21,154 nt of DNA from Octopus sinensis (Eukaryota): positions 1-21,154 of the forward strand of contig NW_021823797.1 of NCBI RefSeq assembly GCF_006345805.1, read 5' to 3'. This document shows positions 4,557 through 21,154 of the stretch, piece after piece. The notes below the pieces were generated by a model. That model saw only the letters and a program-made list of their open reading frames with translations. It was not told the DNA's origin and made no database searches. Within the stretch, counting starts at the first letter, position 1. Each line of letters starts with the position of its first letter. A program made the position numbers and the translations under genes.

Positions 4557-7285
4557 ATGCGGCAAAATAAATTTTTTGACACGTTGCAAGGAACTAGTTT
4601 CAAAGGCACGTCTAATTCCGTACTAAATAAACATTAAAATAATTACAAGGAAGAACTGGAATCTCGAATTCTTGGATTTCAAAACCAAAAACTCTCCGAG
4701 GCCCTCAAATATGCCAAAAATCAAGACTTTAGACAAAAAAGCAAAATCGCTGTTTTTGCAGAAAGAAGAGAAACCGATGAGGCACTTTTTGCACTTATAA
4801 ACCGACATTGGAACCAAGTTAATCCCACTTAGTCACACTTAGCACAATATTGAAGTACGCAGCCTCATTGAACATTATAACTGTGATTCCTTCGAGAATA
4901 TTCCACCGGATGGTACCCATCTGCTTTTAGTTGTAGAAACTGAATCACTCAAAGTGTTTCAGAGAAAAATATCGACAATGGAGACTGAAGAACTCGAGAA
5001 GGAATTTCAAAGGCGTGTTGAATATTCGAATACTTTAATGCTTATCCTTCATCAGGTCTTCGAAGGGTTTCCTATATATATCAAAGATCATAGACTGGTG
5101 ACTAAACTGGACAAATTAACCACGTTTTACAACACTCTTAAAGAATCCCCCGACAGTGCTATTCAAGAGAACCTTAAACTTCTCTCAGCTGATTTGGTCA
5201 CACAACTTACTAATGAAAATGTCTGTCTAAACAACCAACTGATCAAAGTAAACAAACAAAACAGTGGACTATTCTATAAGGTTAATCCTACTGAGTTATT
5301 ACGTAATAGCTTAATGAAACGGATGATAATTTGACTATTGAAATTAATTCAGCTGCAGAAAATAAACGGAAATTGGATGAACTGAACTATGAATTTGCCA
5401 TGCTTGAAAAATATTCAATAAAACTCGAGGAATCTTTAAAACAATCACAACAAGACATTTCTAAAATATCCACAGAGACAAAGGACATTAATCCTCCTCA
5501 GGAGCCCACTAACCCACAGCTCAGTACAGAAGATATGACAGAACTACAACAACTACGTCTGGAAGAACACAATCTTAGACATTTAAATGACTCTCGTCTG
5601 CAGGAATTGGAAACAATGCAGAAAGAGATTGACAGGCTGACTGTGTTAGTGGAGAGTGGGAATGAGAGAGTGGACTATCCAGACTTGTCTGTCGAGTTGT
5701 CATCAGTGAAAAGACAGCTTTCCACCTGCATTTCTGACTTGGCAAGAGTGAAGGCCAGACTGACAGAAAGCAACGAATTGAATTATATTCTTAAAGTAGC
5801 AATTCAGCAGATTAAAGATGATTTAAAAATCGGGAAAGAAATATCAGAGAGTCAGAAGGTGGAGGATATTATTAGGCTGACTGAACAACTAGCAGGCAAA
5901 GAAAAGGAATTAGAACTGGTTAAGCTGGAGAATGAGCAATATGCTTTAATAAAAGAACACACGAATGACGTCCACAGAGAAATGAGACATCTTATAAATA
6001 GTCTGCAGGCATTTAATAAGCAATTGAAGAATAAAAATAATAAATATCACATTAAACTAAATGAAACTCTCAGAAATAACGAGGTTAGTTACTAATGTGA
6101 CACCACTAGATCAATCTACCTGATTTTGCCGGGTATTTTATTACTAATTAATTAACTAATTATTATAGAACAGAATTACATATTTTTGAAGAATTTGAGG
6201 TTTATAGTTATTAGTTTATTGATAGTATTCATTGGGAACAATCAGCGAGTTGGACAAGGCTAGGGACCTTTGTTCAGAACTAATAAGAAGACTGAAGGAA
6301 TCAAGTGAGAACGAAAAGAGTCTACAAAGATGTATAAACCAGCATAGAATTACCAACGAAGACATTAAACGTAAACTGACGTGGCATAAACAGGTAAACT
6401 TGGTTATTTGGAGCCACTTTAAGCAAGAAGATACTCTAATGCAGGAAATGGAAGTGACAGGCCAAGCTTTAGAAGATATGCAGGAGAGGAATCGAGTTCT
6501 AATAGACCAGTTGACTGCAAAAGAGCAAGCCTATGTGGGACTGTTAGCCGAAGTATTAATTTGTTATGAAACATTGAAGAGAATAAAGCATAGACATGTC
6601 ATTGATGAGCTCAACAAGGAGAAGGAGGAGTGGAGACAACAGGAGGGACTACTTCGGAATCAGTTGGACACAACAATCCACATTAGTTCACAATTGGAAG
6701 AAAAGGAGAGTTCATTAACAAGACTATTGACTAATCTTGAAAGCGAGTGCAAGTTGAAGAGGCTTATTTGGAGTGTAGACTGAGAGATGATCGAATTGAG
6801 CTGAGTGGTCGTCGATACTCGGAAGTGCTGCAAAAGTGTGATGAGTTCAAAATAATATCTGACTCACATTACGACCAGTTGAAGGACTCACAACGATTAT
6901 TGCAGGAGAAGAGTAAACTGGTGAGAGACGGGCATTTCCGTGAGAGAAGATATGAGGTTGTTATGATTTGTCATTTTTGTTAGGAGGAGATTGATGGATT
7001 GAAGAGAAAGTTGGCCAAGATATCAAAGTTGAGGGGAGTGGAGGGAGACAGTATGTTGTTGGATGAGATTAAGGAACTGAAGGTAGTCGAATGTGAGGGA
7101 ATGTTTAGGACAGACTGACATGTCCGTGTTGTAATATTCATAGGAAGAATGCAGTGCTGACAACCTGCTTTCATGTGTTTTGTTTGGAGTGCTTGACTCA
7201 CCTATATCAGACGAGGAAAAGGAAATGTCCTAAATGTAATGCTTCTTTTGATGTGAATGAGTTTAAACGTATTTGGTTTGATTGA
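4557..7285 (+). CDS. BRE1: E3 ubiquitin ligase BRE1 (RNF20/RNF40 family), multi-exon, about 798 aa
   Basis: Exons: 4557-4619, 4650-4817, 4843-4912, 4937-5280, 5310-6083, 6110-6132, 6169-6199, 6226-6393, 6424-6552, 6580-6752, 6779-6956, 6984-7082, 7109-7285. All introns are GT-AG with consistent phases (4913-4936 is optional because it is in-frame and stopless). N-terminus [15 protein letters not shown]...[16 protein letters not shown]; core [17 protein letters not shown]; C-terminal [32 protein letters not shown]...[12 protein letters not shown]. All match BRE1 family motifs as I recall them. Confidence 0.95.
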
Positions 7286-7689: not shown

Positions 7690-8700
7690 TTAAGACTACG
7701 CAGGTTAGGGCGCCCTCCCAGCCTCACGGATTGCGAAGCAGTTGCCACGGATTACGGCAATGGAGAGGCGTTGAAGAAGCCAAAAGGACTCTCTCGGGTC
7801 GTCCCTCCTTTTGGAGATTCTTCTCCCCAAACTGCGTAGGAAACAAAGCGACTTGCGGCCGAAGACCCCAGAGGTCTCAATGGCGATGAGCGTGAAAACG
7901 AAGCTGGAGAGATGACCGTATTTCAGGATTTTGAGATCTTCAGCGCGATTGGAAGCAAAGCCTGGGTCGACGGCCGACCTGGCTAGGTTCCCGTTGGAGA
8001 ATGTGTCACAGCAAGTAGAATCCCATATAAGGAATTTTCCCTCTCAAAGGGGAATGTAGTTAAGCCGTCAGGAGAGGGGATGTAACCCGAACTCGTCCAC
8101 AGTTCCGCCACAGCGACATTTATGGGTCTGACAAATTTTGTGTTGGTTAAGTATCGGAGTGAGTTTTTCGTACAAAGACCGACATACAATTTTGTCCCAC
8201 TGGCGCTGGTTGTCCTCGGACTCAGGCCGCCTCGAATCAAACCGGGCCTACCATAAGAGACCTGCCGCGATGAAGTCTGCAGACACTTTCTGTTCGGGAA
8301 GGTTTCGGAGAACGATGTCTGAGAGAGTGCGCAAGGCAGAATGAGAGGACAGATAAGCCGGAAGAGCCAAATCGGAACAGTATCTCAGACCAAGCCCACC
8401 CCAGCGCACAGGTAAGGTCGCTTGAGACCAGCCAGAATCGTCGAAAGCAAGATTGCATAGGGAGTTCATACCAAGCTTAAGGATGTAATCGAAATCAGAT
8501 ATGAGGTCACTTCTGTGGAAACAGGGTGCACATCTTAGCGTATAAGGACCTTGGGGACAGAAAAGTGATTTCGCAGAAGGAAAAATGCGACGTGGGCCTC
8601 GATGTTTTTAAGCCTCTCGATCATTTTAGAAAGATTCGAAATTTTTTCCGAAAATGAAGCTTCTAGGGCGGAAAGACACATGGGAGCCCCAATGATAAAG
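7690..8700 (-). mobile_element. CRE-clade non-LTR retrotransposon, 3' part (post-RT to REL endonuclease), degenerate
   Basis: IGAPM, RLKNIEAHVAFFLLRNHFSVPK, WSQATLPVRWGGLGLR, AEDLKILKY...IAIETSGVFG...FLRSLGRRI...RESFWLLQRLSIAVIRGN. Confidence 0.8.
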
Positions 8701-8745: not shown

Positions 8746-9331
8746 CATTATTTCTTCAGGTCAATTAATTTTTATGACTAAAAAATTATTTATTCGTTTG
8801 AATATTTAATTAATTTTATTTCACGTTTTTTTGTTATTTGATTGTAATGGTTAATCGCAAATGGATTGATTCTTATGTCCAATATGGATTTACCAAATAT
8901 ACTGGATCTGAAAACGTGCATAAAGCGCAGTCCATGATATGCGACGTCATAATGGGAAACAACTTTTTGAAGCTGTCACAATTAAAATGACATAAGGAAA
9001 AAACTCACAAAATGTTGAAACTGTCAAAAGTTTTATTGCTATCTTATGTAAAAATGCACTGGAAGTGATAATTCCTTTCCAACCACTTATTTATGTGAAA
9101 TGGAAATGTCTTGTTATTCTGAAAAGTAAAGTTTGTAGCCGACTTAAGCTGGAAGACGATATGAGAATGGCACTTATTAACATTGTACCAAAAATTGAAC
9201 AGCTAGTTTCTGAAAAGCAGAATCAAAAATCACACTAACTCTAAATACTATGATTTTTTAATTTTGTTAGTTTTTTTATTAAATTGTTTTGTTACTGGTG
9301 GTCCCCGGTAAAAAAAGGTTAAGAAACACTG
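8746..9331 (+). mobile_element. Internally deleted Buster-type hAT (586 bp)
   Basis: Right TIR ggttaagaaacactg (9317-9331); degenerate left TIR cattatttcttcagg at 8746. 8-bp TSD taatagat (8738-8745) / taatagac (9332-9339) with central TA. A BED-finger N-terminus (RKWIDSYVQYGFTK...MIC...SQLK.HKEKTH) is joined to a hATC C-terminus (FPTTYLCEM...RLKLEDDMRMALINIVPKIEQL). Confidence 0.85.
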
Positions 9332-9399
9332 TAATAGACAGAAAGCTCTATTTTCAAGATTCTTTATTTAATCACAGGCTTGTTATTGCCTTGACTAAC

Positions 9400-9730
9400 T
9401 CACACGAGATGCAAACAATTGCGGAAGAGAGGCTGAAAAATTAAACGACATTTTCATGAGTCATGGCCCTTGCTGATATATACACTCTGATAAGTTATCT
9501 GTTATCAGTGATAACAGAATTCAGAAATACGGTGCACCGTCATATCTTTGCCCCGATCGCAGTGGAGACGTCGGGAGTCCTCGGTCCCATAAGTAAAAAA
9601 TTCCTTATTAAACTGGGGGACCTGGCAAGCAGAAGGAGAAATAATCATCGGAAACGAACATGGTTTTTCCAACGAATATCAATAGCCATCTTGATGGAAT
9701 TTCCATTCCATCTTATCCTCTGCTGCTAAT
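9400..9730 (+). mobile_element. CRE-clade 3' fragment
   Basis: FAPIAVETSGVLGP...FLIKLG...WFFQRISIAI in ORF 9463-9729. Confidence 0.7.
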
Positions 9731-9759: not shown

Positions 9760-10060
9760 ATACTTACGACAATTGAATTCAAAAATATTCACATTTCTAA
9801 TTTATGTAAAGAATTCAAAATTACTCATGGAAGGCCGAACAATCAGGGGATATTTGAACGATTTGATCGGAGAATTACAAGGTTTTTATCCAAATTGATG
9901 GCCTCGGATGATAAACAAGAGTGGATAAAACACATTCGAAAGGGTGTATTTTTATGCAATCAGAGCTCATTCGTCCACTTGTAAATTGCATTTTTATTTT
10001 CTAGGCGCTAATCCACTTCAAAGATATCGTGGTATTCCTGGATTTAACATTGTTGCTGAA
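9760..10060 (+). mobile_element. DDE (rve) integrase fragment, Ginger/gypsy-like, with a probable 24-nt intron
   Basis: EFKNIHISNLCKEFKITHGRPNNQGIFERFDRRITRFLSKL...EWIKHI. After one frameshift, RAHSST|CANPLQRYRG spans GT-AG 9981-10004. Confidence 0.7.
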
Positions 10061-10199
10061 TCAGATGTTGAGAAAAATTTAAAAAGTTCTGATATAGTAG
10101 AATTGGAAGTGTAGAAAACCCTGAAATTTAGAATAAACGTTTTTTATTGCTATTTATTAAAAGATGATGACTAACTGTTTAATTCTGAGAGGATAATTT

Positions 10200-10900
10200 G
10201 CATGAATAGGAAGATGGGAGTCCATCAATCAAAATATGAATTTATGACCTCCTTGCAAACGAGCTAAGGCGGATACACCAGTGCAAAGTCAATGCCATTC
10301 CGTGTGTGATGAAATGGGATAGACTGGTCACCAAATACCACAAGCGGTACAGCTAAGTGTAGATAAGTCTCTACAGGCTTATATACAGTCAACTGTTCTT
10401 AAGAGAACTGTGGAGAGTGTCTCGTTTGATGCTCGCCGATTCAGCCCTTTCCTGGCGCTGGACTGCACCTTCTCGAAGGTCTAAAGTGCCAAAGAAGAGG
10501 AGGAAGAAAGGGAGGAGGTGCGTGGAGTGCCATCCTCTGTTCACTTCTGGACTTGGAAAATTATTTAGATAATTAGTTTCTTTTTTATTTCTGACAATCA
10601 TCAACATTGATGGATCGCTTGCAGCGCTTGATCACTATCTGCGCTCTCGACAAAATATGTTTTAAATATCTTCTTGTTCTCCTGGAATGACAGTAAGCGT
10701 CCAGATGGAACGACTATCCTTCTTTTTCGGGAAGAAAAGTCCCTCGTGTAGGATGGCACCTGCATCGACTCTTTTTCTGGACGATCCTACCTAAGACTCT
10801 CAGCAACCCGGGCTCTGGTTCTCCTCATGCTGAAGAGTCAAAAAAATGACTATGTATTTCGAATAGAACAGCTGTGCCACGCACAACAGCCAATAAGATC
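10200..10900 (+). mobile_element. CRE-clade fragment including the REL nuclease motif
   Basis: GAWSAILCSLL (~10515-10550), AALDHYLRS, KRPDGTTILLF...LV*DGTCIDSF (RPDG...WD.TC.D), PGSGSPHAEESKK. The left boundary is weakly supported. Confidence 0.65.
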
Positions 10901-11033
10901 GTTTGGATTAGGAAAATAAATTTTCTAGTATCTTTAGAGCATAATGAACAGAGGCAGCCAGATTTTGTTGAGATAATTTTAGACTGCAGGCCAACATGTA
11001 TCTAGCCAATTTTAATCAACACTTATTTTTTGT

Positions 11034-11037
11034 AAAA
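11034..11037 (-). terminator. Pol III T-tract downstream of the tRNA
   Basis: TTTT on the minus strand, 6 nt past the tRNA 3' end. Confidence 0.5.
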
Positions 11038-11043
11038 CTTAAA

Positions 11044-11117
11044 TGCCCCGACAGGGACTCGAACCCTAGACCTTCGCGTTATTAGCACGACGCTCTAACC
11101 AACTGAGCTACCGGGGC
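11044..11117 (-). tRNA. trnI-AAT: tRNA-Ile(AAT), eukaryotic type, no intron
   Basis: Reverse complement GCCCCGGTAGCTCAGTTGGTTAGAGCGTCGTGCTAATAACGCGAAGGTCTAGGGTTCGAGTCCCTGTCGGGGCA (74 nt). Acceptor stem, D arm, anticodon arm TCGTG-CTAATAA-CGCGA and GGTTCGA T-arm are intact; no encoded CCA. Confidence 0.97.
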
Positions 11118-11959
11118 ATTTTTATATGACAAATCTATAAAAAAAAAACTTTTACACTTTATATATTTTATAAAAGATTTCAATTTGCATCAAACTAAAA
11201 GGAACTTTTTTGGAATAGCTTTTCCTGCACCGATACTTTAGATTTTAATTAATGAAAGCTTTGATCAGGTTGACAAGTTACGCCGTCACAAATATTTTAT
11301 TTCAGGTGGATTTCCATATGAATTAATGTATTTCTAATGGAATGTAATGTGCCTTCCTCTATCTATCATCTGTACTCCAATAAAAAAAACATTAAAGACA
11401 AAAAAGAATTGGATCATATCTTAATTCGTTTTAAAATTGAATAATTAATTTAAATGTTTTTTCTCTAGCTCTTATAAACAAATGGTGTGTTTGGCACACA
11501 CGAAACCTTAAGCGTTTAGCGTTTATAGCAACGCAGATGTGATAGTTGTTGTCTATTTCTAGTGACACTTGACTCTATTCTCAATAACAATTAAGTTAGT
11601 TTATACTGATTTTACAGTATTTTAAAACTTTGAATTAATTTTCAGACCATTTCCCTTGATTTCAATTTCTAAAATTTATAATACATTTTATAATTCCAAA
11701 GTTCTGATTAAATCGGAAAATATAAGCGGAACAATAAAAACCAATTTATTTTGTTGGAATGGTAATTGAAGACGGTTTTCGTTGATTCCTTTAAAGTTCA
11801 GTATGAGGGGTATTTGATTGTACTTTTAAGCATGATCTTGACAAGAATCATCATTAATTAACCGAGACTGGCAAATATATTGCGAGGATTCGGCAGTCAT
11901 TTACCAACTAAATGTTTGAAAACGCAAATCTAAATCACTAGCATCACTATTCATGAATG

Positions 11960-12340
11960 ATTGTTAGTTGTATAAACATCCTGTATATAAGTATGTAAAT
12001 AAATCGTAAAATCAACTGCATGCTTTTACTGATGCAGTGTGCGTTGCCGCGAACAATGGCCAGACAGATGCGCTGGCGGGACCAGAGGCCCTCTCTCGGG
12101 TCCTTAATCCTCCTCCCAATGGACTGCCCGAACTCTTTGAGGAATGAGTCGGTCTCCTTTCCCGCGGCTGCAGCGGTCTCCAGTGCGATTGGCGTAACAC
12201 GGTAGCGGTCCGCGAGGGAAGAATATTTTTGTAGTTTCATCTTTTCGGCGTGGTTTCCAGCCGAACAAGATTTAGCAGCGGAAGAATGGATCCTCGACTT
12301 TGAGAAGGTATCCACAACGGTAACATCCCATACAAATTAA
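11960..12340 (-). mobile_element. CRE-clade 3' fragment
   Basis: WDVTVVDTFS...HAEKMKLQKY...PIALET...FLKEFG..IGRRIKDPREGLWSRQRICLAIVRGNA. Confidence 0.85.
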
Positions 12341-12399
12341 TATATGAATTCGAAACACGTTTAAATAATTTTAAAAAACTCTATCTATCATAACAACAT

Positions 12400-12860
12400 T
12401 TTCGTCACTTAGATAAACTGACATGCAACGATTTCATGCAACTTGAGCTACTTGAAATGCTTTACAACTTACTGCGGAATTTAAGATCATGAGCCGAATT
12501 TTTCGAGTCGAATTCCACAATGAAATATCTGATAGTTTTTGTCTTCTCGTATAATTATCTTTCGGTTTGATTAAAAAATCCAAATGTTTATTTTTTTCAA
12601 TCTTTGTGTGAAGTATCCAACTGAATTTTAAGTTTTTATGGCTTTGTTTCTGTATACCAATTAGAACTCTTTGTCCAAGTAAAACTTCTGTATGTATCGT
12701 AAATATGCCGTTTAGTATGTCGCATAACTGATGAGGAAGTGAGCTTGGCAAGTATTTTATAAGTTTGCCATTTATGTCATCAATACTTTGAAAGACTCAT
12801 ATTCTCAAAGATATCCCGCTTCTAATTCACTAGATGATATTTTTCAACATTGACCTGGAC
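12400..12860 (-). mobile_element. RTE-like LINE fragment (RT N-terminal region), divergent from copy 1
   Basis: INGKLIKYLP...LCDILNGIF...LGQRVLIGIQK aligns by eye with GPELLKYG...IADLFNGMF...IGRVILVPVQK of copy 1. Confidence 0.65.
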
Positions 12861-13502: not shown

Positions 13503-13520
13503 AAGTTCCGGCATTATATA
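13503..13520 (-). mobile_element. 18-bp left remnant of RTE LINE copy 2, ending in the TA target site
   Basis: aagttccggcattatata is identical to 2103-2120 and directly abuts the left Tc1 TIR. Confidence 0.85.
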
Positions 13521-13547
13521 CACTTCATGTAAAAAAAACGGATTTTC
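13521..13547 (+). repeat. Tc1 left outer TIR
   Basis: cacttcatgtaaaaaaaacggattttc versus right-end reverse complement cactccatgtaataaaaaaccggattttc (1 mismatch, 2 single-base indels). Confidence 0.85.
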
Positions 13548-13654
13548 GAATGCTTAATTTTTTGATATTCTGTTTTTATTTTAGACTTTTTTTAATTTAT
13601 AATGATAATCTTCGTAACATTTTTTTTTATATATTTTTCAATAATCTTTTTGTA

Positions 13655-13671
13655 CAGCTAAAGTTTAGCTG
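13655..13671. other. hAT hairpin (P-nucleotide) footprint / left target-site remnant
   Basis: cagctaaa-g-tttagctg. This equals the target site agctaaac (19136-19143) minus its last base, followed by the reverse complement of cagctaaac. Confidence 0.75.
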
Positions 13672-13917
13672 AGGGCAAAGAAGAGAAAATATGAAGCGCT
13701 GCGAGACCGATTCGTGTTCCGATTGTGGTCGAGACAACTGGAGGATAAGTGGGAAATCGCTTCACTTCTAAAGAACCTTGGACGCTTAGTCACATTAAAA
13801 AGCCACAACACACGTGAGACCCGGTGGCTTCTCCAGTTGATCTCCGTTGCTATCGTGAGAGGCAACGCAACGTCAATTATGTTGGCGGGGTCCACTTCGG
13901 ATGGATGGCTTTATTAA
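13668..13917 (+). mobile_element. CRE-clade 3' fragment inside the composite
   Basis: AE.KKRKYEALRDRFVF.PIVVETTGG...LLKNLGR...RETRWLLQLISVAIVRGNA, with frameshifts. Confidence 0.8.
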
Positions 13918-13929
13918 CTTCTAGTAAAT

Positions 13930-13980
13930 TACAATTAATTAATTAATTGTATTGCGTATTTATTATCGTAATAAATACGC
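13930..13980. repeat. 22-bp perfect palindrome plus a 12-bp-stem hairpin
   Basis: tacaattaattaattaattgta (13930-13951); gcgtatttatta-tcg-taataaatacgc (13954-13980). Confidence 0.8.
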
Positions 13981-14019
13981 CTTTATTAAAAAAAGCCATA
14001 TATAATAAAACAAAGAAAA

Positions 14020-16412
14020 ATTTCAGTAACGATAAAAAAGAACTAAGGCGGAGACAATATAATGTTTCTGAAAAGCTTGCAAGAGCTGTGGAGGCAAGCA
14101 CATCGGTGGATTTTCACACTGACCAACCATACGTCGAAAAAATGGGTAGGTCTGCAATTCTCACTTCATTGATAATAAAATAGTGCCAGATAATACTGAA
14201 TAAAATCATTCTTCCCCATTTTATAAAAAAACGAAGTTGTATATTACCCAGATTACAAATGGGGGACCTGTCTCCGACATGAACTTCCATAACTCTTCAC
14301 AAACAGAGCTTCAAGACTTTTTTTGGCAGAAATGATTTTGAATGCCTGATATGCAGAGTCTTGATTTTTCAGTAGAAAGGACAATAGAAAATATCATAAA
14401 CTAATTCTGGACATTGACCTTCAGCAAATAGTCAAGGGCATCATTTGGTCTCCCACATTTAAAAATAGTAATTCCATGCAGTCGAAAACTGAAAGGATCA
14501 CGGTGAAGTAAATTTAATATATTCAGTGCAGAAGTGTACTCCCCAATGTTGTACAAGCCAATAAATCCGTTAATAATTCGCATTGATTAGTGCCCGGATA
14601 TGAGACCAAAGAAGAAATATATTCTCCAGTCATTCTCAAATCGACAAGGCTTCTCTTGCGTTAAATATAACCGCACAATCAAGGCTGGATAGTTGTTCGG
14701 GGCGGAGAGAAAATACGTCGTTCTTTTCTGAGATGTGCTGTAAAGCAATTTTATTGCCGATCATCTGATGTTTGAAATCCATAATTCATGAACGACCCAA
14801 GTAGAGACTGAGCCATTGCATCGTTGGGTCGAGCCTCCAAATAATAAAAAAGACCTTCAATGGCCTTGGTGACTTGATCCTCTGGAGATGAATCCTTAGT
14901 GATATTACAAGACGGAATATTTTTTTTCCATTCTGAAAACAGGATATCGAACACTATTTTGTCGCCACGTGCACAGCAAAAAATCGATATGTAAAAATTG
15001 ATGGATTGAAGCCATTAATAGCTACCATCAAATGCTTGTCAATTCCATCAAAAATTTCCCAATGATCTGAAGTGCCCGCTTTCATTAGAAGAATTTTTAA
15101 CATAATTTCACTATCCCGAGAAAATGAAACATTCTTGGACATTTCAATGACACGAAAGGAGTGCTCATAATCCTCACATGTGTAATAAAGTACAGCCAAA
15201 TTGACAAATGCACGTTCGTTGTGTTGAGAAGCATCAATTGACTTGAAAAATGATTTTTCAGCGAGAACGTAATCCTTGAAAAAGTAAGCAACAGTCCCCA
15301 AAAGAAGCCACGAATCAGAACTCCCACCACTCTCAAACAGAGGAGACTGCACAACCCACGGACAAATCACGGGCACTCTCATTTCCATTAATTCTCCAAA
15401 GAAATGAGGCAGCCAAAGCACAGTTATAAAACGCAGAACACAGCCTGGTCATAATGGCCAAATGACCAAAGGCCCAAATACTCAACTTGACGTATGTCTG
15501 AAGAGTTTCATGGCCAGGAGGAGAATCGGGGTGGAAACATAGCTGGGAAAGACGAAAGGCAGAATAACCAAATAAAAACAGAACTATTTTCTGATCTCTG
15601 CTTTCCTGGGATAAAAAACAACGGAGACTGTCGAAAGCAATTGTATAAATGTCAAAAGCTTCCAAAAAACGATTTTCTGATAACAAATCGTCTCCGAAAT
15701 AGCACATAACTTCAGCATAAAGGACTTTAAAAATCGTCAAATCTTCCGATTCTTCGTTGGTTGAATTCAGCAATTCTTCGAGGGTTGAGGCGATCTCTTC
15801 AAAGTCCCCGCTTTTAAAGGAAGAGATTGTAATAATCAGTTTAACTAAAAGCCTCCATTGGGGCATGTCTTGAGACTTTTCGAGAAAAGATTTGTGGTTA
15901 AAAGTCAGACTCATTCCACTGAGTCGAATCAGTTCTGTTCTCAACATTACAAAAATGAAACAATCTTTGTCAATGTCGATTGCTAGGTCACAAATCCGCA
16001 GAGATTGGGAGTATTCTCCATTGCACATGTAAAATATTGCCAGTCTGCGGAGTGCGGGGATCATTGCTGGAGAAAGATCACTTCGCATGAAATTTTGAAG
16101 GTATTTTTGACTTGAATCTTTGTTTAGTAGACCGAACTACTTCCTGGTAGGCAATGGCATTTCTGGTACTAAGGAATCGAGAATGTAGGCTCTTTCATAG
16201 CAAGAATAAGCACGGTTTGAATCGTTCATGAAATATTGGAAAAAATCTCCAAATTTTAAGAAAATTTGAGCATTCTTTGGAACTAATTTGACTGCTTCTA
16301 AAAAACAGGAAAAAGCAGAATAGAGTCCTTCAGTTGTGTCTTTGTAGCAGTGTGAGTAGGCACGGGTTGTGTACATTTCGGCATTTTTTAAATTCAATGT
16401 TTCAGAATCCAT
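14020..16412 (-). pseudogene. SKI3: SKI3/TTC37 (SKIC3) TPR-protein copy, lacking the N-terminal TPRs and frameshifted
   Basis: Segments match TTC37 as I recall it, in the same order: CFLEAVKL...FLKFGDFFQYFMNDSNRAYSCYERAYILD; ALRRLAIFYMCNGEYSQS; SWLLLGTVA...LAEKSFFKSI...AFVNLAVLYY; YYLEARPNDAMAQSLLG; TGEY. Probable 30-nt intron at 16140-16111. Frame changes near 14955, 14780, 14640 and 14585 have no fitting GT-AG intron. The 3' boundary is approximate. Confidence 0.82.
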
Positions 16413-16710
16413 ATTTGTAGCCAGCTCTTTCGTTATTTATTTTATTTTATTTAGGATAATATGTTATGAAAATATAACCATAAATATGTAAAAAAAATAA
16501 TTAAATAGATTTTCCAATATTTTGATTAATAAAAATTAAATTTTGGCATAAAAACTACTTGTTTTAACAAATCTGACAATTTTGTAAAAATTTTAAGAAT
16601 CTGCTTTTCCGAATTTACATTGAGAGGAGTTTCTAATAATTAGCAGACAACCTGAAAACCTACGAGAAGCCCTGAATTGCATACTTTGATGCAAAATAAT
16701 TAGGGGCTAT

Positions 16711-16862
16711 TGTTTATTATTCCTCCTTACTGAAATCATTTTTCAAGTCAATTGATGCTTCCCAACACAACGAACGTGCATTTGTCAATTTGGCTGTACT
16801 TTATTACACATGTGAGGATTATGAGCATAATGAAATGCTTTCCGTGTTTATTATTCCTCCTT
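16711..16862 (+). repeat. Templated insertion: inverted 95-bp SKI3 copy flanked by an 18-bp direct repeat
   Basis: 16733-16827 is the reverse complement of 15162-15256 (94/95). tgtttattattcctcctt occurs at 16711-16728 and 16845-16862. Confidence 0.92.
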
Positions 16863-17032
16863 TACAAATTCGTAGATGTTTTCCAAAATGCTTCACTAGG
16901 AAGAAATGTCTGAACAAATTAGATCGAAAACAAATAAAATTGACTTAGCTATCTTTAATTTCTTTCTTACAAAAAAATAAATAAATAAAATTGATATCAA
17001 ATAATAAAATTTAATGAATTCCTTTATCGATT

Positions 17033-17108
17033 TTATTAAAATTAACAATAATCTATATATTTAATAAGATTCGTTATTAAAATTAACAATAATCTATATA
17101 TTTAATAA
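17033..17108. repeat. 35-bp tandem duplication (period 41)
   Basis: ttattaaaattaacaataatctatatatttaataa at 17033-17067 and 17074-17108. Confidence 0.92.
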
Positions 17109-19135
17109 ATGAAAATATTTTTAACAACGTTTGGATTCGCTAAATTCATTGCCCCAAATAATGAAATAAAGGCAAAATGCATGATTTGCCATAGAATTTT
17201 GGGAAACAATTCACTGAAACCTTCTCAACTTAGGCGCCACAAAGAGTCTGTACACCCAGAAAATTTTTCCTCACATGAATATTTTAAAGTCAAAAGAACG
17301 AAGTTTGATTCACAGCCAAAGCTTGAGTGGTTTAATAAATCTCAAGATAAACCGAGATTAGAAGCATCATATGCTGTAATTTTAATTTATCTAAAACAAA
17401 TAGGTCTCAATGATTATCGCAAAAAACAAAGCTGCACATAATTCTGGTGAAAAGTTATCAAACCAGCGGCTCTTGAAATGGCTCGAATTTTGTTTGGTCC
17501 GGATGCAGTTACCAAACTTAAGGACATACCATTATCCAACGATTCAATTTCCCGTAGAATTTCAGAATTGTCATCTGATATCCTGAAGCAATTAATTGAA
17601 AGAATCAATAAAAGTAAATGCAGAATAAGTATTCAATTGGACGAGTCAACTGACATTTCTAACGTCTGTCAGCTTGTGTCCTATGTTCGCTTTGTTGATG
17701 ATGAGAATATTATTGATGAGTTTTTATTTTGTTTGGAGATGGATGGACACACTCGTGGAGAGGACATCTTTAATATTTTTGACAATTTTATGAAGACGAA
17801 TAAAATCCAATGGGATAAAGTTGGATCTATATGTACTGATGGTGCACCTGCGATGATTGGTCATCAATCTGGACTTGTTACTCGTATTAAGGATTTGGTT
17901 CCTGATATTGTTACAAGACATTGTGCATTGCACAAATATGCACTTTGTTCAAAAACTATGTGTTCGTCGTTAAGAGAAACACTAAACACTATTGTAAAAG
18001 TGATAAACTATATTCGATCTCGACCACTTAATCATCGAATTTTCCAAACTCTTTGTGAAGAGTAGGAAGTGATCATTCTATACTACTTTATCATTCTGAA
18101 ATTAGGTGGCTTTCAAGGGGAAAAATCCTTTCGAGAATTTGTGAACTTTCCCCTGCGATCTCTTTGTTTTTGCGTGATAATATGCAGCATGATTGGGCCG
18201 ATCAATTCGATGATTTTACTTTTAAATCGAAAATGTATTATCTTGCCGATTTTTTTAACATTTTAAATGAGTTTAATTTGTCAATGCAGGGTAAAAATTT
18301 TATTAATTTATTTAAAGGTCTTATATATCAGTTGTCGAGGTCAATCAAATAATAATGGCTTTTAAAAAAAAGTTATTATTGTGGATAATGAAAATAAAAA
18401 AAGGAATAACATCAATGTTCCCAATGCTTGAATATCATCTCGGACACAACCCCGGATAATGTTCTTCTAAGTCTGATAATCAAACATCTGGAAAATCTCA
18501 AGACAAAATTTGATGATTATTTTCCTGTTGAAGACCCAATTCCAAACTGGATCGTTCAACCTTTCTTGACCTCATTTAAAGAATATCAGGAACTCAATTT
18601 TCAGCAGAGCTTGATTGAACTTCAATGTAATCAGTCTGCTCAGATTATTTTCAAATGTACTTCATTATTAGATTTTTGGTATTCTCATTAATAATTACTT
18701 TTTATTGTTAGGTGTCGATGGCGAAAGAATTCCCCATTTTGAGTAAAACTGCATTGGAATCAATACTTGCATTCCCCACTACTTATCACTGTGAAATGGC
18801 GATGTCGTGTCTGACTTTTCTAAAAACAAAATATAGAAATAGACTACGGGTACAAGATGATATGCGAGTAGCTTTGTCGAACATAGAGCCTGATATAGTA
18901 AAATTATTCTGAGCAAACAAGATCAGAAATCTCACTAAAACTATTAAATTTTCTGTTATTTTCATAATGTTCATGTTATTTTTATAATAAATATTCGAAC
19001 ATGTCTAAACCTGGCCCTGACGAGGCCAAAAATTGTGCGCTAATACCAAAAAATGTTTATTTTATTTAAGGTGGTCCCCACAAAATTTTATAGTGCAAAA
19101 GTGGTCCCCAGTCTAAAAAAGGTTGAGAACCGCTG
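17109..19135 (+). mobile_element. Buster-type (ZBED5/SCAND3-like) hAT, transposase pseudogene; right TIR present, left TIR not found
   Basis: BED finger (FGF...AKCMICHRILGNNSLKPSQLRRHKESVH); core PLSNDSISRRI...IQLDESTD...CTDGAPAM...RHCALH; hATC FPTTYHCE...KTKYRNRL. Right TIR ggttgagaaccgctg (19121-19135) is followed by agctaaac. Stops and frameshifts; candidate introns at 17376-17403, 18291-18317 and 18679-18711. Confidence 0.95.
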
Positions 19136-19164
19136 AGCTAAACTGACTATATTAAATTTTTTCT

Positions 19165-19183
19165 GTGTAAAAAAAACCGGATT
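19165..19183 (+). repeat. Tc1 left inner direct repeat
   Basis: gtgtaaaaaaaaccggatt repeats the core of the outer TIR. Confidence 0.75.
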
Positions 19184-19200
19184 AGAAAAAAGTCAAATGA

Positions 19201-20210
19201 TTAATAATTAATGTGTCCTCCATGTGCCTTATAAAGCTCAATGCTTCTTCTTGGCATGCTTTCAGTTAATTTTCTCACAAATTCCATTGGTATTTAGTCC
19301 CAAATTTTTATGATATTTTCGCATAAATCCTTTTTACTGTGCAGCATTTTTTTACTCAATTCTTCCTTTATGTAGCTCCACACATGTTCAATTGGGTTCA
19401 AATCTGGTGATTGTGGTGCCCAATTTAATAATTCAATTTTTTCTCATCCAAAAATTGTTTTGTTCTCCGTGAATTATGACAGGAGGCCAAATCTTGTTTG
19501 AAAATAAAACGATTTAGCCCCATTTTATCTGCCGATTTCCACAAATTATTTATTAAAATGTTGATATATACAGCAGAATTTATTTTTCATTTACTATAAC
19601 CAAATTCCCCTTTCCATGATAGGAGATACAACCCCATACCATAATTGTTCCACCACCAAACTTCAAAGTTGGCGTTAAATGGGGATAATTTAAGGCTTTA
19701 TTTTGTTTCTAAAGCAAAATTTTCTTTTTTTAGATGAAAAAATTTCAAAGGAAGCCTTGTCACTCTATATAACAGTTCTCCACGTTTCATTGCTTATTGC
19801 AGAAAAGATTATTAAAAGCTCGTATTGTTTTTCACTATTTTTTTTGATAAAAAAAGTTTTCTTTTACACACACATGCTTTGTAATGAATTTCATGTAGAT
19901 AATTGCTTATTGTTTTTTTGCAGACAACTTTTCCTGTAAAATCGAAGACTTCTTTCAGGTTGGCAAGTGTTTTTTTTGGATTTTCTTTCACAATGTTGAC
20001 AAGTTTACAAATATCTAAGTTAGAGAGCTTTTTGGGTCTTCCAGAACCAGGTATACGATCAACAGTCCCTTTTTTATTTAACTTATTCAGAAAATCATTG
20101 AGAGTCGAAGTTAGAATATTCAGCTCCTCAACAATCTTTTTTTGTGTCCAATTTAATTGAATGAGAGCTAGGATCTTTCCTTTAGTGATTTTATCAAGCA
20201 TTTTTTTCAA
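19201..20210 (-). pseudogene. Tc1 (DD34E) transposase pseudogene
   Basis: HTH and GSGRPKKL N-terminus (ORF 19812-20210), then WRTVIYSDK, FKQDLASCH, LLNWAPQSPDLNPIEHVW and ESMPRR...AHGGH across stops and frameshifts. Confidence 0.95.
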
Positions 20211-20249
20211 ATACCTAAAAATTGGCTTAGCAACAGACTAATCAAAAAA

Positions 20250-20269
20250 AATCCGGTTTTTTAATACAC
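20250..20269 (-). repeat. Tc1 right inner direct repeat
   Basis: Reverse complement gtgtattaaaaaaccggatt. Confidence 0.75.
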
Positions 20270-20408
20270 GCTAAGATTTTATCAAGATCAATTATTCAAA
20301 TATACATTATAATTTTAAAAATAGTAAAAAGATACAACAAACGATTGCTGAAAAGTAATTTAAAAATTGATATACATTTAAAAAATACTAGTAAAAACAT
20401 GCAAACTT

Positions 20409-20437
20409 GAAAATCCGGTTTTTTATTACATGGAGTG
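20409..20437 (-). repeat. Tc1 right outer TIR
   Basis: gaaaatccggttttttattacatggagtg, followed by TA and LINE sequence. Confidence 0.88.
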
Positions 20438-20439
20438 TA

Positions 20440-21000
20440 GAAGTATTGGCTTCACTAGTGAATTGTATAGTCTTATCCGTGTTTTTGTGCTGAATCCTTT
20501 GCGTTTTAGCCAATTTTCCTTTAAGCTGCGTAGTGCACTGTTTGCATGTGTTTTTCGCATAATCTTCGTCTTCCAATAGAGATCCGAGTTTCTTTACTTT
20601 TCTCCAATGTTCGTCCAGCTTAGACTTCTGTCTTGCTAGTTCAGTAAATTCTGTTTTCTCCAAATTTACATTGAGGAACCACTCAGCAAGTCTATTTGGC
20701 ATCACCTTTCGGAAGAAATAAAATCCACGTCATCCGCGTATGCCACCACATTGATCCGTTTCCTTCATAGTATGGTTTTAGTTCTTTCAATGCAGCTTCC
20801 AGATATATGACAAACAGTATAGGAGATAACGGATCCCCTTGAGATGTTCCAGATGTTGTTTCAAATGGTTTAGAGCACTTGTCTCGTACCCTGACCGATA
20901 GATAGGTTTCTGATAAGAGTGCCCTGATCATCCGGATAGAAGATTCATCAAGGGATTCATTGACATATCGATGCCAAGAATGTATGTCGCATTTTTGACT
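20440..21000 (-). mobile_element. RTE-like LINE copy 2 (RT domains 3-7 region)
   Basis: 20440-20768 is nearly identical to 2121-2457 (about 7 substitutions and one 8-nt indel by eye). Further upstream it has GIDMS and GTSQGDPLSPILFVIYLE, which copy 1 lacks. Confidence 0.92.
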
Positions 21001-21154
21001 CGCTCTCCCAGAAGGACAAGACGGTTCAGTGTGCCACTACGATGAATTGCCGGAGCCGTGGTTCACCGCCACGCGCTTCCGGCTATTCTAGTGGTGTCTT
21101 TTATTTTCTAGGCGAAAGCAGGAAGGAGAAGTCGAAGCCTGGACCCTCCCAGGT

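Follow-up and report, generated by a model that had tools for sequence, protein, structure and literature searches.

Can a transposon take up a large piece of a host RNA-decay gene and carry it through a genome? This question is raised by a 6,917-bp segment (positions 13521 to 20437) of Octopus sinensis DNA, in which sequence resembling SKI3 (SKIC3/TTC37), the tetratricopeptide repeat (TPR) scaffold of the cytoplasmic SKI complex, is enclosed by the two ends of a Tc1 element. The window analyzed here is the entire contig VCDQ01009435.1 of assembly GCA_006345805.1 (ASM634580v1), with a length of 21,154 bp. In an earlier note on this DNA, the segment was read as a Tc1 composite resembling a Pack-TIR (TIR, terminal inverted repeat), which would have captured about 2.4 kb of a multi-exon SKI3 gene, including a probable intron, and could still be mobilized in trans. 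Our results point with reasonable confidence to another history, namely, a four-step nest of transposons in which the foreign DNA is filler at the broken end of a second element, a Buster-type hAT, lying in the Tc1.

Nested insertion of LINE, Tc1, and hAT elements

The outer boundaries of the segment were read directly. From left to right, the filled site consists of the flank aagttccggcattata, TA, the element from CACTTCATGTAAAAAAAACGGATTTTC to GAAAATCCGGTTTTTTATTACATGGAGTG, a second TA, and the flank gaagtattgg, and the uninterrupted (empty) target sequence, aagttccggcattataTAgaagtattgg, is present at 2103 to 2131 in a copy of a long interspersed nuclear element (LINE) in the same window (copy A, from 2103 to about 3719, minus strand). 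When the element and one TA were removed in a script, the joined flanks were identical to positions 2100 to 2463 at 347 of 356 sites, with the alignment passing across the junction. The right flank is itself a LINE copy (copy B, 20438 to 21154, minus strand), which begins with the right TA (20438-20439), has its reverse transcriptase (RT) core from about 20692, and is 96 to 99% identical to 2119 to 2457. The left-flank match is short, with 18 of 18 nucleotides identical before the sequences diverge; these nucleotides (13503 to 13520, minus strand), the last of copy B and including the left TA (13519-13520), occupy the predicted left-flank position, and 18 exact bases at that position are not due to chance. 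The locus thus has a TA target-site duplication (TSD) with a matching empty site, as is characteristic of Tc1/mariner insertions.

The two copies of the outer LINE (2103 and 13503) share their last base, which lies 16 nt away from the TA targeted by the Tc1. The open reading frame (ORF) downstream of the RT is still open at this shared end, and the flanks further out differ between copies A and B; the shared stop marks either a common truncation or, if the LINE family is an unusual one, its true 3' end. In addition, copy A (2457 to 2584) is devoid of the RT core present in copy B (20768 to 21154), with the similarity of the two copies stopping at 2457/20768.

The ends of the Tc1 element (CACTTCATGTA.. 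and CACTCCATGTA..) are those of inverted repeats, and in each arm a binding-site motif is repeated. This motif, AATCCGGTTTTTT, was found at 13532-13544, 19171-19183, 20250-20262, and 20412-20424. Because each arm carries an outer and an inner copy of it, the outer element is a Tc1 of the inverted repeat/direct repeat (IR/DR) type, about 1.44 kb in length without its insert and with ~180-bp inverted repeats containing two binding-site repeats each. Between the arms lies a transposase remnant (19204 to 20210) matching the Pfam families HTH_Tnp_Tc3_2 (1.2e-13) and DDE_3 (3.3e-13), i.e., the paired-like helix-turn-helix (HTH) and DDE/D catalytic domains of Tc1/mariner transposases, and its reading frame is broken by stops and frameshifts in several places. 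The distal arm is an intact 188-bp repeat (20250 to 20437), with its inner direct repeat at 20250 to 20270 and its outer direct repeat and end at 20409 to 20437. The other arm is interrupted: its outer part (13521 to 13655, minus strand), with the outer direct repeat at 13521 to 13547, and its remainder at 19144 to 19183, with the inner direct repeat at 19165 to 19183, sum to about 175 bp, and 5.5 kb now separate the outer from the inner direct repeat. The remaining Tc1 sequence, from 19144 to 20437, is likewise on the minus strand.

A Buster-type hAT element (17130 to 19135, plus strand; transposase pseudogene, 17109 to 18909) lies within this interruption. At 90%, its 195-aa ORF clusters with four RefSeq entries, each called "protein ZBED8-like [Octopus sinensis]" and located on contigs of 45 to 522 kb, and a zf-BED match (9e-4, Pfam), together with the precomputed domains FAM200-ZBED5, DUF4371, and FAM200-GTF2IRD2-like, reveals the BED zinc finger and Buster/ZBED5-type transposase core of the hAT Buster group. 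Given its clustering with O. sinensis proteins, the contig is octopus DNA; a contaminant contig (e.g., from an octopus parasite) was rejected, since copies of this hAT with 98% identity are present on four further contigs of O. sinensis, which reach 522 kb. These four loci (L002, L003, L004, and L005) were compared with the window. Full-length siblings are about 2.35 kb long, with the 15-bp TIR CAGCGGTTCTCAACC and perfect 8-bp TSDs, canonical copies being located at 9388 to 11733 in L002 (GGCTATAC on either side) and at 8669 to 11026 in L003 (TTCTAAAT on either side). L005 equals L002 in the hAT insertion, coordinates, flanks, and TSD, and thus the two are probably one locus on two contigs (haplotigs or redundant assembly).

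The window hAT is 98.2% identical to L002 to L005, only over 17130 to 19135 (17230 to 19135 in L004). Left of 17130, the siblings run on for 331 bp to the left TIR, while the window has unrelated DNA there, and the window hAT has lost its left 331 bp. At the right, its terminus ...GGTTGAGAACCGCTG lies directly inside the inner Tc1 motif and ends at 19135, with the right TIR (reverse complement of CAGCGGTTCTCAACC) at 19121 to 19135. Sibling comparison revealed that the 8 bp past the right TIR vary between distinct insertions, and the right duplication in the window is therefore AGCTAAAC (19136 to 19143, plus strand). The left copy, AGCTAAAG, was found at 13656 to 13663 (plus strand), precisely where the Tc1 repeat breaks off, and differs at its last base (G versus C in the right copy). 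The right TIR, the right TSD, and seven of the eight left TSD bases are thus present and the left TIR is missing; to judge from the sequence, a complete hAT formerly sat between 13663 and 19136. Another candidate hAT end, CAGTTTAGCTCAGCGG... with the TSD ACTATATT, was rejected because the siblings fix the end at ...CCGCTG.

The nest order of the earlier note, with foreign DNA in a hAT, the hAT in a Tc1, and the Tc1 in a LINE, is therefore right, and its Tc1 ends, TA duplication, 6,917-bp span, exact empty site, Tc1 transposase remnant, and Buster hAT were all borne out. As far as one copy can tell, simple successive nesting fits the divergences, which are similar at 2.5% between the LINE copies and 1.8% between the hAT and its siblings.

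Several features of related hAT copies are recorded here. In L004, the hAT (~9819 to 11728) is also left-truncated, at a different point (window-equivalent 17230), with AT-rich DNA adjoining it and no left target duplication in the retrieved sequence; in this Buster-type hAT family, the left end may be lost recurrently. In L002, the canonical left end (9388 to 9641) contains a 127-bp tandem duplication of the TIR and subterminal GTGGTCCCC motifs, with a second TIR-like sequence, AAGCGGTTCTCAATC, at 9515 to 9529. A search of the window for a second hAT left TIR found none, the one weak match (9317 to 9331) belonging to another hAT fragment. The latter (~9048 to 9331) comes from the 3' part of a second hAT of related sequence; it shares 75% identity with 18743 to 18810, carries the subterminal motif GGGGACCAC, and has as its terminus, at the positions of the weak match, the TIR CAGTGTTTCTTAACC (reverse complement).

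Footprint and filler at the broken hAT end

The left junction reads GTAC AGCTAAA G TTTAGCTG AGGGC. In it, the palindromic tract GTTTAGCTG (13663 to 13671, plus strand) corresponds exactly to the reverse complement of the flanking CAGCTAAA together with the C expected as the last TSD base. The match is 9 of 9 at a position fixed beforehand by the duplication, and the chance of a 9-nt match is 4^-9. In the chemistry of the hAT transposon Hermes, the top strand is nicked by the transposase one nucleotide into the flank, and the 3'-OH of the flank then attacks the bottom strand, so that the flank is sealed as a hairpin. Opening of a hAT hairpin off its tip gives rise to a palindromic addition, with the element-adjacent base swapped for its complement. 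The tract is therefore a flank-hairpin footprint, which argues that hAT transposase cut the left end of the element without releasing the right one. For TcBuster, a Buster-type element, footprints that are complementary to the flanking DNA have been documented (PMC3499496).

Where the left 331 bp of the hAT were, 3,466 bp (13664 to 17129) now stand. No part of this filler is present in any of the four other hAT loci, and a search of it for the missing 331-bp hAT end gave no significant alignment. From left to right, it is composed of a retroelement 3' end, about 260 bp (13995 to 14255) for which no match was found, the SKI3-like remnant, and 693 bp of AT-rich DNA (16437 to 17129). The first piece (13672 to 13994, plus strand) is the 5'-truncated 3' end of a non-long-terminal-repeat (non-LTR) retroelement, as the earlier note had recognized: the C-terminal 82 codons of an ORF (13669 to 13914) are followed by a stop codon (13915-13917), AATAAA (13970-13975), and A7 (13988-13994). 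The ORF is 37% identical (E value of 9e-10) to another ORF of the window (11947 to 12315), whose family is located downstream of an RVT_1 ORF in L004. A domain downstream of the RT fits the restriction-like-endonuclease LINEs, to which CRE belongs, CRE being a candidate label for the clade of the filler fragment.

Outside the composite, 11947 to 12751 (minus strand) is a fragment of an RT-bearing non-LTR element with a counterpart at L004 6182 to 8237. Window positions 12031 to 12333 are 87% identical to L004 6200 to 6502, the end of an element with an RVT_1 reverse transcriptase upstream, and the C-terminal domain of this element is a relative of the 82-codon fragment in the filler.

The AT-rich DNA next to the hAT contains an inverted copy and a tandem duplication. 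The inverted copy (16733 to 16827) repeats 95 nt of the SKI3-like remnant (15162 to 15256) with 99% identity and is bracketed by direct repeats, GTTTATTATTCCTCCTT(T)AC, of 19 to 20 nt at 16712-16730 and 16846-16865. The 35-nt tandem duplication (17033-17067/17074-17108) ends 21 bp from the hAT junction. Such patches, for which a strand takes a neighboring stretch as its template and then resumes where it had left off, are the mark of template switching in repair synthesis. Both the 99% identity of the patch and the 98.2% identity between the hAT and its siblings suggest recent events.

Identity and condition of the SKI3-like remnant

The coding remnant at 14256 to 16436 (minus strand) is collinear with SKI3 residues ~469 to 1016 and probably to ~1150. 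In a PDB search, its pieced translation matched human SKIC3/TTC37 (E value of 5e-11, 45 bits) in two collinear stretches (query 24-185 to residues 473-635 and query 365-427 to residues 831-895), versus at most 14 bits for other natural TPR proteins. With a profile of 20 metazoan SKI3s, for which orthologues were obtained via P0011 (itself matching human SKIC3 at an E value of 1e-196), the ORF at 16436-16140 matched hidden Markov model (HMM) positions 466-516 (1.6e-11) and the ORF at 15448-14957 matched positions 817-873 (5.6e-7), with consistent spacing. Moreover, hhalign returned a single alignment of 507 columns between query 24-564 and SKI3 469-1016 (probability, 96.8%). These collinear matches indicate that the fragment is homologous to the middle of SKI3, in its central TPR region, and the homology is specific to SKI3 over generic TPR proteins, at an identity of about 20%. 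Only residues from about 450 to 1150 of a scaffold of about 1,400 to 1,600 residues are matched, the N-terminal ~450 and C-terminal ~350 residues being missing.

The fragment is not a gene. Its frame is interrupted by in-frame stops (TAG at 16139-16137 and TAA at 14589-14587) and by at least four frameshifts (near 15340-15440, 14960-15010, 14755, and 14400). Open stretches of 267, 164, and 99 codons are present, the longest of 267 comparing with a maximum of 151 in 500 shuffles, and this retained coding signal indicates that the fragment was coding until recently. A probable intron had been proposed in the earlier note, but the breaks in the ORF are stops and frameshifts that the profile alignment passes collinearly without large insertions, leaving about 720 codons contiguous. 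Frame-restoring GT..AG pairs occur at all six ORF junctions, with 5 to 108 each by chance, and none of those inspected was convincing, that is, had a good donor and a pyrimidine tract. The lack of an evident intron across about 720 contiguous codons argues against the DNA-level capture of a multi-exon gene that the earlier note had supposed and points to a complementary DNA (cDNA) or retrocopy source.

The fragment is only 17 to 20% identical to every SKI3 tested, molluscs included, whereas over the same alignment columns animal orthologues are mutually 37 to 63% identical and a fungal SKI3 (Umbelopsis) is about 30% identical to those of animals. It is thus farther from animal SKI3s than fungal SKI3s are. 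None of the protein searches revealed a parent. A word-indexed search with the 251-aa SKI3-like ORF found nothing. In an exhaustive search of a collection in which representatives stand for about 15 billion predicted proteins, no match had an E value of 1e-30 or better; multi-TPR proteins of bacteria and a single true SKI3 (P0011) headed the list. This collection includes the RefSeq proteins of O. sinensis, and none of these was a close match to the fragment. A mixed-alignment search was overrun by generic TPR proteins and yielded no parent, and in exact-protein look-ups of the SKI3-like, Tc1, LINE, and hAT ORFs, the hAT ORF alone was on record. Given the low identity and the lack of a close protein, the fragment was not recently copied from a normal molluscan SKI3. 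Of the "copy of the host SKI3" in the earlier note, the SKI3-like coding remnant, on the minus strand, was thus confirmed, and its derivation from the host SKI3 was not.

Assembly of the locus and its meaning

These observations are probably best explained by four steps. A LINE copy was in place, an IR/DR-type Tc1 of ~1.44 kb entered it at a TA, and a 2.35-kb Buster-type hAT entered one Tc1 inverted repeat between its direct repeats, duplicating AGCTAAAC; these steps, like the missing hAT end, the footprint, and the patches, are shown by the sequence. Later, hAT transposase would have cut the left hAT end only; the flank would have been sealed as a hairpin and opened 9 nt off its tip, leaving GTTTAGCTG, and the freed hAT end would have lost 331 bp. 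Finally, the break would have been closed with 3,466 bp of filler, comprising the retroelement 3' end, the divergent SKI3-like fragment, and AT-rich DNA with templated patches. A single hAT-transposase cut presumably started the repair, as suggested by the footprint, and the filler probably came from cDNA or a preexisting retrocopy locus rather than from a multi-exon gene, the absence of introns being the single pointer to a cDNA origin of the SKI3-like piece. Some points weigh against this history. The retroelement and SKI3-like fragments lie tail to tail, while simple priming from two broken ends predicts otherwise. The left TSD copy matches at only 7 of 8 bases, a mismatch that the model predicts, yet the TSD call is weaker taken alone, and the 9-nt hairpin tract exceeds the few nucleotides usual for hAT footprints. 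Moreover, one copy of the composite was examined, on a short (21 kb) and unplaced contig.

Could the two coding pieces instead have arrived by separate retropositions, i.e., a 5'-truncated LINE and a processed SKI3-like retrocopy entering the hAT 5' region with an insertion-linked deletion and no hAT cut? The truncation and the AATAAA and A7 ending of the retroelement fragment, as well as the intron-less state of the SKI3-like piece, would agree with this. However, the SKI3-like piece is truncated at both ends and carries neither a poly(A) tail, which would appear as a plus-strand T-run, nor TSDs, so that it does not have the structure of a processed retrocopy, and both the 9-nt flank-complementary tract beside the retained TSD and the 95-nt inverted patch with its flanking direct repeats would be left unexplained; we consider this course of events unlikely. 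A Helitron and a chimeric retrocopy were also rejected, on the end sequences and the opposite orientation of the two pieces, as read from the DNA. As for the parent of the SKI3-like piece, it could be a fast-evolving paralogue, a retrogene, or something else. We regard it as rather improbable that the octopus has, or recently had, an unannotated, fast-evolving, intron-less SKI3 paralogue or retrogene, or acquired such sequence from outside, with the fragment being a young copy, possibly transcribed from the surrounding elements.

Capture by the Tc1 itself, as a Pack-TIR that took up about 2.4 kb of a resident multi-exon SKI3 at the DNA level and can still move in trans, is very unlikely. Both Tc1 ends and a perfect TA duplication do bracket a segment containing SKI3-like sequence, and single-copy gap-filling Pack-TIRs, mostly hAT and Tc/mariner, exist in animals (Tan et al. 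2021, Nat Commun 12:4280, PMC8277862). However, the foreign DNA replaces the left 331 bp of the hAT and adjoins the truncated hAT and the hAT footprint, not Tc1 sequence; the fragment has no convincing intron, no SKI3 to which it is more than 17 to 20% identical, and no parent in the protein searches; and the published screen drops intron-less copies of multi-exon parents as retroduplicates (PMC8277862). The cargo was thus not packaged by the Tc1; it is filler that closed the broken end of a hAT, and the location of this hAT in a Tc1 is incidental. Nothing supports mobilization of the 6.9-kb composite by Tc1 transposase, which the earlier note had entertained: in one arm of the Tc1, 5.5 kb now lie between the outer and inner direct repeats, and the filler occurs in none of the four other hAT loci. 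The composite is probably an immobile, single-copy by-product. Finally, an assembly artefact, in which reads from several repeat copies were joined and the SKI3-like DNA is not truly in the Tc1, might be suspected because the window is a whole short, unplaced, repeat-rich contig and because L002 and L005 reveal redundant contigs in the assembly. For such a chimera, several joins would have to coincide outside repeated sequence. Moreover, both Tc1 ends fit a single LINE target site to the base, the halves of the split Tc1 repeat sum to full length, and the hAT TSD is present on both sides together with a mechanism-specific junction footprint. Given the base-exact fit of three independent junction pairs (Tc1 in LINE, hAT in Tc1, and the hairpin tract), we judge it highly improbable.

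Elsewhere in the window, a few further features were observed. Rfam and tRNA scans found nothing inside the element, their sole match being a gene for tRNA-Ile with the anticodon AAT, or else the tRNA-derived head of a repeat, at 11043 to 11118 (minus strand; Rfam, 64 bits, with ARAGORN in agreement). Three adjoining open stretches of 126, 254, and 183 aa at 4954 to 6783 (plus strand) are coiled-coil-like and have no Pfam match; they might represent an exon of a gene, a retrocopy, or the ORF1 of a transposon. The contig start (1 to 188) is 77% identical to L004 4545 to 4737, DNA that adjoins a Tc1-like HTH gene, and is therefore another Tc1-family fragment at the contig edge.

Among described systems, the locus shares features with several. 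In hAT footprints (Ac/Ds, Tam3, hobo, Hermes, and TcBuster), a flank-complementary palindromic addition likewise stands beside the TSD, with the TSD base nearest the element complemented. Filler DNA is also established for Ds, and, as in abortive gap repair, filler bearing short templated repeats stands here in place of a lost part of the element. Different from these cases, only one end was processed and the remaining element stayed, the hairpin tract has a considerable length of 9 nt, and the filler, with retroelement and gene-like sequence, is of unusual size. Capture of cDNA at double-strand breaks is known from Ty1 cDNA at yeast HO breaks, endonuclease-independent L1 insertion, and templated sequence insertions. 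By analogy, the 5'-truncated retroelement 3' end and the intron-less coding fragment without target duplications might be such captures, although the tail-to-tail layout and the missing poly(A) of the SKI3-like piece are unlike them and an RNA origin is suggested solely by intron absence. Compared with SKI3/SKIC3/TTC37 proper, the fragment retains a collinear central TPR region, SKIC3 being by far its best natural PDB protein, but it differs in its low identity, its two missing ends, and its broken frame.

The nearest described category is the single-copy Pack-TIR generated by gap filling, for which the usual animal hosts are hAT and Tc/mariner elements and for which the formal criteria are captured sequence other than transposable element (TE) DNA with terminal parts of one TIR element on either side of it and a unique parental copy of at least 90% identity, located elsewhere and not linked to TEs, with retroduplicates excluded (PMC8277862). 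Shared features are non-TE DNA between transposon termini, a break in a TIR element, signs of template switching, and a single copy. In contrast to this category, only the right hAT terminus survives, so that the hAT does not enclose the cargo; the Tc1 termini do so in a loose sense, with the hAT between the cargo and one Tc1 arm. In addition, no parent at 90% identity or above was found in the protein searches or the four hAT loci, the cargo is intron-less, and the filler is composite and 3.5 kb long.

Thus, the locus does not demonstrate that a transposon took up and spread a host RNA-decay gene, and the biological consequence suggested earlier falls away, the remaining puzzle being the source of such a divergent yet recently intact SKI3-like sequence. 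The composite is an ordinary though instructive product of transposon break repair. It provides a base-resolved, natural example from a cephalopod of a hAT element cut at one end and repaired with kilobases of foreign DNA, by the same gap-filling route that has been proposed for most animal Pack-TIRs. Moreover, the locus implies that hAT transposase was active in the Octopus sinensis lineage after this insertion, the hAT siblings differing by only about 1.8%.

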